Part shown: piece by piece, positions 5,228-31,318 of the stretch | Numbering within the stretch: position 1 is the first letter of the stretch | Layout: every line of letters begins with the position of its first letter | From: Hyaloraphidium curvatum SAG 235-1 | Lineage: Eukaryota > Fungi > Monoblepharomycota | NCBI GenBank assembly: GCA_025558095.1 | Contig: JAIVFI010000012.1 | Span: 310,001 to 374,000 of the forward strand | DNA: 64,000 nucleotides | Direction of reading: 5' to 3' | Position numbers and translations under genes: made by a program | The notes under the pieces: model-generated | Told to the model about the DNA's origin: nothing | Databases searched by the model: none | The model's input: the letters and a program-made list of their open reading frames with translations, nothing else

Positions 5228-6006
5228 CGCTGGAGCTGCGCGGGGAACGATGTTGGGCAACAATCGCGATCCGATCCGGCGAGCTGCGGGTAGAATGGAA
5301 GCGTTTGGAGGGGAGCGGCACCCGGATTGGGAGACAGCGCGGCGGACCAGGAGGCAGCCGATTCGCCCACCGCGTTCATCGAACAACTCCGTAGGCCCCG
5401 ACAAGTGCTTAGCTGCTACGTGCCTGAATTTGCAACGGCCGAAGCCGGAAAGAAAGCCTGATCAGGTAGATCAAGCGAGTGGGTGGAAGCATCCGGGCGA
5501 AGGCGTATCTTGCAAGGATCACGTCACAGCTGCGGTCTCACCACGAATGCAGGTGATTCAACTTTCTTTCCGATCGCCGAACGCAGAATATGATGGATAT
5601 GGTCCGCTCTGGCCGGGATCAGGCCAAGGCCGTTGCCGCGAAAGGCCAGCTTTTCCGTCCGCCTGGCGCGCGCAATCCAGGCCAATCCGCCCCGGCCTCC
5701 CCGGAGCTTGCTTGCATTTACCGACAGAGCAGTATGCTGCATTCGTCCGGGCATCGGCTGGCTGTGCGCGGGTTCCGTGCAAGCTCGTGATTACCCCAAT
5801 GATGGGGCGGCGGGGCGGCCGTCTCCGCGCCGCCACACCTCACTCCCGGCAACCCCAGCCGGCCCACCATTCTGGCTTCGCGCGACGCCGTACGCCGCCG
5901 GCGGCCAGCGGGCGCGCCGCTCGGAGATGGCGCGCCGCAGCTGAGCGGGCCGGACGGCTCGTCGGACTCGGAGGCCGACTCGGACGCCGCAGACGACCCC
6001 GCGGCG

Positions 6007-7406
6007 ATGCTGTTCAGGCGGCCGTCGGGCGACCCGGCCGCGGACGCGGAGGCCGCGCTGGCGGTGCCGCACTCGGGCGCGCGGATCGTGTCGGCGACCG
6101 TCGGTGGGTGATCTGCGTGTGCCGCATGTCGCTCTGCCTGACTGGATTCCACGTCCGCCCCCCAATGCAGTCCACCAGAGCACCGAGGTGGCGCACCCGC
6201 TGTCGTCGTCCAACATCTCAATCGGCTCGCTCGTCTCGTCGGCGCTGCCGCAGTCGCTGGTCGACGCGCTGCCCGCGATCGACCCCAACGCGAGAGTGGC
6301 GCCCGCCGGCGTGGTCGCGGAGGTCATCGACGACTCGGCCTCGTCCGACGGCTCGGTCGCGGGCACCCCCGGTCCGCACGTCGTGCGCGTGCGCCTGCGC
6401 GCCGCGGACGCAAAGGCCGCGGAGGGCTCGCGCCGCAGGCTGCCCCCCGGCGCGCGCACGTACGAGCCGCTGCTGCGGCCGCGGAAGAACCCGCATGGCC
6501 TGCTGCGCTTCGAGGACCTGCCGGCGTGGCTGCGCGACAACTTCTACATCATCACGGGATACAGGCCCGAGCTGTCCACCTACACGGCCTGCCTGCGCTC
6601 CATCTTCTACGTGCACAACGAGTCGGGCAACATCTGGACCCACCTCTTCGGCGCCGCCCTCTTCGTCGGCCTGGCCGCCTACACCTACGCGGGCGTGTTC
6701 CCCGCCCTCGGCGCCGCGGACTGGCGGGACGCGGGCGTCTTTGCCGCCTTCTTCCTCGGCGCTTTCGTGTGCCTCTCCATGTCGGGCTTCTTCCACACCT
6801 TTTGCGCGCACTCGGCCGAGGTCTCGTGCCGCTGGAACAAGATCGACTACGTCGGCATCGTCGCCCTCATCGTCGGCTCCTTCTTCCCGCCCGTGTTCTA
6901 CGGGTTCTACTGCCAGCCCGCGTGGCAGTACGCCTACCTGGCCGGCATGACGATCCTGGGCTCCCTATGCGTGGGTTCCGCCCCTCTCTGCCGCCCTCCC
7001 CATACCCTTACGCTCCCGCCCCGCCTCGCAGGCCATCTTTGCCGTCGCCGACGCCTTCCAGCACCCCTCGTGGCGGTGGTTCCGCACCTCCCTCTTCCTC
7101 GCCCTCGGCTGCTGCGGCGTCGTCCCGCTGATCCACATCCTCGTCTCCCTGGGCTACCCCGCCGCCGTCTCGATGGGCATGTGGTACATGGTCGCCATGG
7201 GCCTCATGTACGTCGCCGGCGCGATGCTGTACGGGTTCAGGTGGCCCGAGAGGCAGTGGCCGGGGAGGTTCGACTACGTGGGGCAGAGCCACCAGATTTT
7301 CCACGTGCTCGTGGTGGCGGCGGCCGCGGCGCATTGGTTGGGGACGGTGGGGAGCGCGAGGTGGAGGCACGATCCGGCGGAGGGGAGGTGGGCGTGCGGG
7401 GCGTGA
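6007..7406 (+). CDS. PAQR / hemolysin-III family membrane protein (IZH / adiponectin-receptor-like); start uncertain
   Basis: LPAWLRDNFYIITGYR, HNESGNIWTH, SGFFHTF, DYVGI, PERQWPGRFDYVGQSHQIFH; introns near 6103-6170 and 6970-7031. Confidence 0.93.
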
Positions 7407-29081: not shown

Positions 29082-29524
29082 CGCCGCCACGGAGCCCACT
29101 GGAAGCGCCACAATTCTCAGCGACAGCGGGCAGCACGTTCCGAAGCAAAGCCTACTCTGGCCTGTGGGGTGCCGATGCGTAGTTTGCGGTGCTGTGCGGG
29201 GCCGATTCTCGTGCCCGACGGGGAAGATTCGTCGGCGCGGTAGGACTGGGGGCCCGGCGGGCAGGCGGAACAAGCCAATTTTTGTCGCTTTGCGCGGATC
29301 CCCCAAGCACCCTCGAAGATGCAGCGTGCCTGTCCAAGCACTGCAAAAGAGCAAAGGGCATGCTCAATCAGGTGCATCGATGCTATTTGGCGCTCATCAT
29401 CGCATTCCGGGGACCACCTACTGCATCGAGTCGAGCCGCTCGGCCTTCATTCCTTCTACAAACATGGGAAACCAGAACGAAGACACATCTAATTGACGCC
29501 GGAAACGTAATCTAAACGGAACAT

Positions 29525-30692
29525 CTAGGGCTGCGCAACAGTGGCAGACGAGCTGGAACCTTCGACGGCGTCCACGGAGCTGGAAAGGAAACTCGATCAA
29601 TGGGGATGATTGCATTCGGTGGCACAAGTTCGCCTACCTCTTCGAGATGCTCCCAGCGCACTCCTCGGGAAGACCGTCCAAGCTGGCGACAGATGTTAGC
29701 ACTCGGCACCGGTGATCAGGAACGAACAGCTCACGTCGACGACGAGTCCTGGCGGACGGTTGACTTCCTCCGCCGCTGCTGCACGACTTCGAGATGGGCG
29801 CGAATATTGGCAACCCGGGCGCCCTCAAAGGAGGCACGGCGGGCCGCGGCGGCATCGAGCTGCTTGACGATCTGCGCCGGCGACGATCTGCAACAGACGT
29901 TCAGACCTCGTATCCAGCTGTGCTCAACCCCACTCACGGAGCTCCGAGCTTGGCTCGCTCCTTGCGCTCCTCCACATCGCGCCAATGCTTGGCCAGCTCC
30001 TCCCGCTTCACGTTCTGCAGGGCGTCGCGACGGGATGCCGCTGCCTGCTGCTTGGATTCAATGTCGTCCAGCCCCGGAGCCAGGCTTTCGGTTTCGAATG
30101 GTCCAAGATCAGCGCCAGTCGAAGGAGCTGCGGCAGCAATGTAGACCCACGAGTCGGCCAGGGCTGCGGCCTTGCGTACGGCGACGGCCTCGTTGTGCTT
30201 CTTGATCTTTTCGAGCCGCGACTGCTGCTCCTCGACGCGCTTGATCTCCACGAGTTGCATTTTCGAGAGGATGCCCTGCAGTCTCTCGACTGCTCCGAGC
30301 TCGGCCGTCCGCTTGGCGAACTGCGAGACGTCGTGCGCTCTGGTCGCAGAGACGTGCGCGCGGGCGGCAGTGGTCGCGTCCAGCATCTGGGACCTCAATG
30401 AATCTCCTGGGAAATTGAAAGTCTTTCGAGCGCCTTCACCTTTTTGCGCTCGGCGGCGCGGGCCAGCTTGGCGGCAACGTCCGCGGGGGAGCTGATTGAC
30501 GTCCGAAATGAGCCTCCTGCACCTCCTCATCCGCCGGAAGACGACGTCGCCAGCAAAACATGCTCACGTTTCGATTGGCACGGTCGCGGCCAGCTTCGGC
30601 TTCCGAGCGGGAGTGGTCAGTCCCTCGAGGGGGACTTCAAACGCGACAGCGCGCGCTGCCGGCTCTCCGGCGGCGAGAGAGGCCTGGTCCAT
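29525..30692 (-). CDS. Stathmin-like protein with four helical repeats; multi-exon; 3' end at 29525 or 29634
   Basis: Introns 30492-30567, 30387-30439 and 29888-29937 give AVAFEVPL...SPADVAAKLARAAERKK-x41-KMQLVEIKR..., matching stathmin motif spacing. Confidence 0.72.
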
Positions 30693-31318
30693 GTTGAAAT
30701 TGGGAGAATTGGCGTCGGCTCGGTGTTCTTGAATTGAAGGAAATATGGGCGGCGCCACCGGGGAAGTGGGTGTTGCCGGGGTAGGGGGGCGGGGAAGCAG
30801 AAGCGACAGGGACCGAGTCCCCCGGCAAGGTGTCCGCGATTTCGACCGGCGGCCGGGCAACAGTGCCGAATTGCACTGAAAGCGCTACTCCGGGGGTGCG
30901 CTTCTGACCGGCGGCCCAGAATTCTGCGTTTGCGCGACGCTTTCGGACTTCGGGAAGTGACGAGGGCCACAGCCCGCAACTGCAACACCCATTTTGGCGT
31001 CCGATCACTTCGACTCAATTCTCCACAACCATCAAGAACAGGCAATGTCAACAGTCGCTCAGAAGACGCCCGCGATCCTGTCTAGGTCCCGCCGGCCGGC
31101 GACCCGCCGCCAATGAAACTTTCAGGCGCTTAGAAAAGCGAGGATCATGCATTCAGCAACGACTAGCCCCTTAATTGGAGCTCAAAGGATTCAAGTCTCC
31201 TGTTCAGTTAGCGCGATTCCCTGTCGCAGGCTGCTCCGGCAAATCCCGGGATGCTCGAACGCTGACTGTGCGCGTTCCTCAACAACCAACAACCCGGGGA
31301 AACCCGGCCGTGCCTGCC

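Follow-up and report, generated by a model that had tools for sequence, protein, structure and literature searches.

Stathmin biology has been worked out almost wholly in animals, and the family is absent from yeast models. Drosophila stathmins are reported to carry three or four tubulin-binding repeats and to bind up to four tubulin dimers. The title of the 2010 paper on these isoforms (Lachkar et al., J Biol Chem 285:11667) is cited in PMC3694009. In the animal stathmin-like domain, an N-terminal hairpin caps the longitudinal face of alpha-tubulin, and two dimers are bound along a helix in a curved arrangement that bars them from the lattice; designed stathmin-like domains bind from one to four dimers (PMC7491153; PMC11238091). 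Deng et al. (2024) assembled a set of 5446 proteins that contain a stathmin-like domain and placed non-animal stathmins in Fungi, ciliates and choanoflagellates, a mainly opisthokont range (PMC11238091); their main text names no fungal species. Searches of the literature returned no paper on stathmin in connection with holozoa or Chytridiomycota, so fungal stathmins are apparently unstudied; no experimental work on a member from Fungi came to light.

The gene described here lies in a window of 64,000 nucleotides, the whole stretch of DNA of Hyaloraphidium curvatum (Monoblepharomycota) that was analysed, and all coordinates below are positions in that window. It occupies the minus strand, from its ATG at 30692 to its stop at 29525, and is split into seven exons. 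A database match through its largest open frame led to one protein of 270 residues, the NCBI entry "hypothetical protein DFJ74DRAFT_665813", here called P0001. The translations of all seven exons recur in P0001 letter for letter and in the same order, with one residue for each split codon. P0001 served as the query for all full-length analyses, and exons were searched singly. A transcript contig of 1215 nt from a public run maps to the locus with six skips, all of which read CT..AC on the plus strand and GT..AG on the strand of the gene. Six precise splices identify the contig as cDNA, so the stathmin-like gene is expressed and the gene model is right. The features of the locus are these.

30693..30900, minus strand: 5' leader, carried on by about 164 nt upstream of 30900 according to the contig; part of the contig piece 30568-30900.
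30568..30692, minus strand: coding part of exon 1, Met1 to residue 41 plus 2 nt, with the motif AVAFEVPL (residues 15-22) and T27 in TPAR.
30492..30567, minus strand: intron 1, 76 nt, GT..AG, donor GTGAGC, supported by the transcript contig.
30440..30491, minus strand: exon 2, residues 43-59, with the SP site at S43; repeat 1 begins here, as does the long helix (predicted from residue 44).
30387..30439, minus strand: intron 2, 53 nt, GT..AG, donor GTGAAG, supported by the transcript contig.
30151..30386, minus strand: exon 3, residues 60-137, the remainder of repeat 1 and the whole of repeat 2, contributing to the Pfam match of residues 16-131.
30085..30150, minus strand: intron 3, 66 nt, GT..AG, in frame and with no stop codon, supported by the transcript contig.
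29938..30084, minus strand: exon 4, repeat 3 (residues 139-186), 147 nt, phase 2 to 2.
29888..29937, minus strand: intron 4, 50 nt, GT..AG, donor GTGAGT, supported by the transcript contig.
29735..29887, minus strand: exon 5, 153 nt, phase 2 to 2, residues 188-237, with the SP site at S189, repeat 4 and the basic cluster RRRK (225-228).
29683..29734, minus strand: intron 5, 52 nt, GT..AG, donor GTGAGC, supported by the transcript contig.
29638..29682, minus strand: exon 6, 45 nt, phase 2 to 2, residues 239-252, in the disordered tail (pLDDT below 50 from residue 238).
29580..29637, minus strand: intron 6, 58 nt, GT..AG, donor GTAGGC, supported by the transcript contig.
29495..29579, minus strand: exon 7, residues 254-270, the stop codon TAG at 29527-29525 and a 3' UTR of 30 nt or more.

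A preliminary description of this DNA, made from the letters alone, had quoted peptides from a spliced reading, and every one of them is found in translations of the minus strand from 30692 to 29525. The three introns it proposed are real according to the transcript contig, which supports the GT..AG junctions, while the full number is six. Two of the introns added lie near the 3' end, and the third is intron 3, between repeats 2 and 3; the reading had run through this intron, which is in frame, and the peptides quoted are unaffected by this. The gene cannot be called hidden, as that description had it, since the protein was already annotated by NCBI with a precomputed match to PF00836.

The open reading frame at 29934..30530 spans intron 3, the sequence of which is absent from P0001. 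Only the spliced form is seen, in a single contig; retention of this intron, if it occurs, would add 22 residues between repeats 2 and 3 and leave the frame intact. Exon 4 corresponds exactly to the third repeat unit and exon 5 exactly to the fourth, and the symmetric 2-to-2 phases of exons 4, 5 and 6 fit growth of the protein by exon duplication. Skipping or duplicating any one of these three exons would leave the frame intact; exon 6 of Drosophila stai, which may be compared, is alternatively included (PMC3694009). No alternative splicing of the H. curvatum gene is seen in the one contig.

On the strand of the gene, no ATG occurs between 30900 and 30693. If the leader beyond 30900 is real, it holds upstream ATGs at 31032 and 30992, the second of which opens a 35-codon upstream ORF ending at 30885 (region 30885-31064, minus strand). 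An ATG-led open frame on the plus strand (MSTVAQ...) begins within 30994-31116. The contig past 30900 may represent a merger of two divergent transcripts instead of a true leader.

Searches of the H. curvatum genome with P0001, with the family profile and with two of the relatives introduced below (P0005 and P0006) returned this locus and no other, and by these searches the stathmin-family gene appears to be single-copy. A six-frame search of the same genome with PF00836 gave no match, missing even this gene, and gave none in control genomes, which makes it uninformative. The best stray match in the genome, on contig C10, lies among long charged open frames devoid of stathmin features and was treated as a likely chance match.

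P0001 matches the Pfam model Stathmin (PF00836) in two stretches, with 25.9 bits and an E-value of 1e-5. The gathering cut-off is 24.7 bits, so that HMMER places the protein in the family named by the preliminary description by a margin of 1.2 bits. The better stretch aligns residues 16-131 with profile positions 15-132, with about two indel positions over 118. Residues 1-62 alone have Stathmin as their sole Pfam match, with 16-61 aligned to 15-61 of the profile. Residues 1-136 alone score 23.2 bits, and their match covers the range that the full-length match covers; residues 137-237 alone score 15.9 bits in two stretches. Stathmin is also the best Pfam family for each of the two later repeat exons searched singly, at scores below the cut-off: exon 4 (repeat 3) has 14.2 bits, E 0.043, over profile positions 42-82, and exon 5 (repeat 4) has 15.7 bits, E 0.016, over positions 46-84. 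Apart from Stathmin, a weak match to Muted is the only other Pfam result for P0001 at E <=10. TCP11, which had been raised earlier as an alternative, has no profile match at that threshold. Ala, Arg, Glu and Lys are abundant in the protein, and sequences so composed tend to produce spurious helical matches. Searched alone against PDB with phmmer, P0001 finds no stathmin at E <=10, so its direct signal is weak and the case for homology passes through intermediates.

These intermediates are few. Among 1.8 billion representative proteins searched with P0001, only four others were found at E <=1e-3: P0003, of 241 residues, on a transcript-like contig (E 3e-9); P0005, of 340 residues, from the ichthyosporean Chromosphaera perkinsii in EukProt (E 1e-4); and two fragments, P0002 (143 residues) and P0004 (68 residues), from a close relative or relatives of Hyaloraphidium. 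Profile searches add proteins from Endogone sp. (P0006, E 9e-13) and Jimgerdemannia flammicorona (P0007), both Endogonales in the Mucoromycota, as well as P0008, of 437 residues. The Pfam Stathmin scores of P0003 (26.3 bits), Jimgerdemannia (31.3), Chromosphaera (38.8) and Endogone (44.5) all exceed that of P0001, and BLASTP aligns P0001 with the Endogone protein at 1e-5, collinearly.

Several of these sequences have peculiarities of their own. P0008 is represented by 14 near-identical members in JGI, Logan and NCBI, on contigs of 1.4-2.8 kb. It contains two consecutive stathmin-like modules, the second of which begins near residue 254 with AVAFDMDV and has SP/TP sites clustered behind this motif; P0008 has no Pfam match at E <=1 and is joined to the family through the family profile only (E 9e-6). 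The Endogone protein (sp. FLAS-F59071) has a hydrophobic stretch amid its helical repeats, at about residues 172-200, that is missing from P0007; an intron left in the deposited gene model is its probable source. A contig of run SRR26194948 (L008) carries a genomic orthologue on its plus strand at 5351-6432, with an identity of about 44-47% and with N-terminal motif and repeats in the same order; P0002 is merely the 3' half of this orthologue. Among its neighbours are an AAA gene of the ClpB/Hsp104 type and one encoding a RING finger, and its repeats 3 and 4 lie within one open frame with no intron between them.

The strongest single result for homology is the reverse search against PDB. A profile built from six non-animal members of the family was run against 177,635 distinct PDB sequences and returned 22 matches at E <=10, the best at 2.3e-4. 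All 22 are stathmin-4, stathmin or designed stathmin-like domains. The alignment of the family profile with stathmin-4 is gapless from the start of the helix through the 41-residue spacer, with one 3-residue gap near the end of repeat 2. The Endogone protein alone finds stathmin-4 constructs in PDB at 8e-5, its last unit lying close to the end of RB3 repeat 2; the Chromosphaera protein alone, searched by phmmer, finds no stathmin there. In a language-model search of the ESM Atlas, clusters of arthropod stathmin (stai) rank first, and 22 of the 30 matches belong to that family. Foldseek gave no match in PDB for the predicted model of P0001, as expected for long single helices, and a profile of the N-terminal region alone likewise gave none. 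A profile of the Hyaloraphidium clade alone was discarded, MAFFT having placed repeat 3 of a fragment on repeat 2 of P0001. Taken together, the Pfam score above cut-off, the higher-scoring relatives, the stathmin-only reverse search, the matches of Endogone to stathmin-4 and the ESM Atlas neighbours make it very likely that P0001 is homologous to stathmin, and the family membership proposed in the preliminary description is supported.

The anatomy of P0001 can be read against that of stathmin. In the AlphaFold2 model, built from a small alignment, residues 1-43 are disordered, a helix runs from 44 to 184, a break at 185-189 is followed by a second helix from 190 to 237, and the tail is disordered. 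Four repeats are anchored at K50, K101, K149 and K195, giving periods of 51, 48 and 46 residues, with Pro-Gly or Pro-Ser-Ser-Pro as helix breakers between repeats. By our own count, the spacing from RR to H is 14 residues in units 2-4, as against 17 in stathmin-4 and in the Endogone protein. Shuffling (500 permutations) shows the similarity of repeats 2 and 3, 3 and 4, 2 and 4, and 1 and 4 to be above what composition yields (z about 4, the score being reached by 0-2 of the 500), while the pairs 1-2 and 1-3 do not rise above composition. Two spacings noted earlier are recovered in the alignments: the 41-residue register, which runs from K59 to K101 in P0001, is a gapless span in the HMMER alignment with stathmin-4, and the spacing between AFE motif and helix is one position off that of the Pfam profile, as the pairing of residues 16-61 with profile positions 15-61 indicates.

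The motif AVAFEVPL at residues 15-22 stands outside the helix, in the region modelled as disordered. It has counterparts in the orthologue on the independent genomic contig (AFEIPL), in P0003 (AVAYQIDI), in P0005 (SVAFDVDV) and, in mid-protein ahead of the second set of repeats, in P0008 (AVAFDMDV). Since the N-terminal profile finds nothing, the correspondence with the stathmin cap rests on a short motif and its spacing. The SP/TP sites that the preliminary description placed in linkers, including a TPAR of CDK type, are indeed there: P0001 has only three, T27 (TPAR), S43 (SPAD) and S189 (SPAQ), and all are non-helical. P0003, P0005 and P0008 have S/T-P sites at matching linkers. The Endogonales models lack the AFE motif and the Endogonales proteins have no S/T-P sites, so these features are not universal among the fungal members. 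P0001 starts with MDQ, and has neither Gly2 nor a nearby Cys for lipidation.

A mechanism can be proposed by analogy with the animal proteins. Within the disordered N-terminus of about 43 residues, AVAFEVPL would be the counterpart of the N-terminal cap strand of the animal stathmin-like domain. It is followed by a candidate proline-directed site, T27 in TPAR, and then, from S43-P44, by a predicted helix with two repeats at a period of 51 residues; N-terminal region, T27 site and first two repeats would together constitute one complete stathmin-like domain. Beyond it come two further, shorter repeats (periods 48 and 46), with one symmetric exon for each and an SP site ahead of the last, and then the predicted disordered tail. 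In this scheme the longitudinal face of alpha-tubulin would be capped by the N-terminal motif. Soluble alpha/beta-tubulin dimers, one to a repeat and up to four in all, as the preliminary description had supposed, would be lined up head to tail along the helix in a curved row, and would be kept out of microtubules until phosphorylation of the linker sites freed them. The helical region, 44-237, is 194 residues long, which at 46-51 residues per dimer leaves room for about four. We regard this functional part of the stathmin reading as plausible, and the reading as a whole as probable: an expressed single-copy gene of the stathmin family, encoding a stathmin-like domain with two extra repeats that would, by analogy, sequester several tubulin dimers.

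A more specific proposal, to which we give somewhat less than even weight, is that non-flagellate fungi (Hyaloraphidium, Endogonales) have a working multi-site tubulin-sequestering stathmin whose units are modules, each with its own proline-directed kinase site, units 3 and 4 standing on symmetric exons of their own. If this is true, phospho-tunable buffering of tubulin existed before the animal-fungal split, the origin of stathmin is separated from cilia, contrary to the cilium-linked origin that has been proposed, and fungi gain a tubulin regulator that yeast models lack.

The chief alternative, which we consider unlikely, is that P0001 is a true relative of stathmin that has diverged in function, keeping fold and repeats while not sequestering tubulin, and acting instead as a scaffold, in the nucleus, or by sensing soluble tubulin and not buffering it, the role proposed for STMND1. 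Its identity to animal stathmins is low, alone it has no match in PDB, its repeats are three residues shorter, and helix breakers come between them. The RRRK cluster at 225-228 would suit a nuclear protein, and STMND1 has a nuclear localization signal within its stathmin-like domain (PMC11238091). Deng et al. argue, moreover, that membrane-bound and ancient stathmins may sense tubulin and not sequester it (PMC11238091). Against such a loss of function, the stathmin-like domain of P0001 is collinear and its N-terminal motif is correctly spaced, and STMND1, which is likewise divergent, still binds tubulin with a sub-micromolar KD (PMC11238091). The MDQ start, without residues for lipidation, also speaks against a role of the membrane-bound kind. 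Far less credible is that a charged, Ala-rich single helix or coiled coil unrelated to stathmin has passed the Pfam cut-off through composition: the 1.2-bit margin, the biased composition and the blank results of Foldseek and the N-terminal profile would agree with this, but 22 of 22 PDB matches in the reverse search are stathmins among many thousands of coiled coils, a chain of significant links runs from P0001 through P0003 and P0005 to Endogone and stathmin-4, the match is near-gapless and full-length and not local, the conserved N-terminal motif is non-helical, and an independent language-model search puts stathmin first.

The H. curvatum protein is an uncharacterised member of a known family, and not a new kind of system. 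The value of the finding is tempered by the fact that Fungi are already among the hosts listed by Deng et al. (PMC11238091) and in Pfam-based annotation, so a fungal stathmin is not in itself the novelty that the preliminary description took it for. A number of repeats greater than two is not new to the family either, given the Drosophila proteins with three or four that were mentioned at the outset. The presence of the family in Fungi and in an ichthyosporean, judged by sequence, fits an origin before the animal-fungal split. Neither Hyaloraphidium nor the Endogonales are known to have a flagellate stage, which goes against the connection with the flagellum that had been suggested for this gene. 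Presence in non-flagellate fungi is also awkward for a cilium-linked origin of the oldest stathmins. Should a fungal stathmin prove to bind tubulin, sequestration by a phospho-regulated helix would predate the animal-fungal split and would have been lost later, in Dikarya.

Five described systems bear comparison with P0001. The fusions of a stathmin-like domain to TCP11 found in Rhodosorus marinus (PMC11238091) also provide a stathmin-like region outside animals; P0001, unlike them, has no TCP11 match at E <=10, and in it the stathmin-like region is the whole protein. STMND1 and the "ancient" stathmins of choanoflagellate type resemble P0001 in being divergent, in falling outside the STMN1-4 clade and in having a basic cluster within the helical region (PMC11238091). 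STMND1 is found in cilia and bears a myristoyl/palmitoyl motif at its N-terminus (PMC11238091), whereas P0001, with its MDQ start, has no lipidation motif.

The vertebrate proteins STMN1-4, among which RB3/stathmin-4 forms the T2R complex with two tubulin dimers, share more of the layout. Like P0001 they have a disordered N-terminus, an AFE-type motif at a nearly equal distance from the helix, a proline-directed site just ahead of the helix, a 51-residue register along a long helix, predicted in the case of P0001, and a match to positions 15-132 of PF00836. They have two repeats where P0001 has four, and units 2-4 of P0001 are three residues shorter. P0001 differs further in its Pro-containing linkers between units 2 and 3 and between units 3 and 4 and in having no palmitoylated N-terminal extension, and its identity to the vertebrate proteins is too low for a match between single sequences. 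The isoforms of Drosophila stai are closer in scale, with more than two repeats, a length of about 240-290 residues and a repeat number tied to exons, and arthropod stai clusters are the nearest neighbours of P0001 in the ESM Atlas. Stai is an animal protein in which all four sites are reported to bind tubulin, whereas P0001 is fungal and its tubulin binding is putative.

The engineered stathmin-like domains R1-R4 (PDB 4f6r, 4f61) consist of one to four chained units, each a single repeat about 42 residues long (Mignot et al. 2012, cited in PMC7491153). The best alignment of the last Endogone unit is with a construct of the R1 type, and the family profile matches both R1 and R4. The engineered domains were designed from RB3, whereas the units of P0001 are natural and joined by Pro-rich linkers. 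The four-unit anatomy of P0001, with one symmetric exon for each of units 3 and 4, would make it a natural counterpart of the engineered scaffolds for one to four tubulins that are used in structural work.
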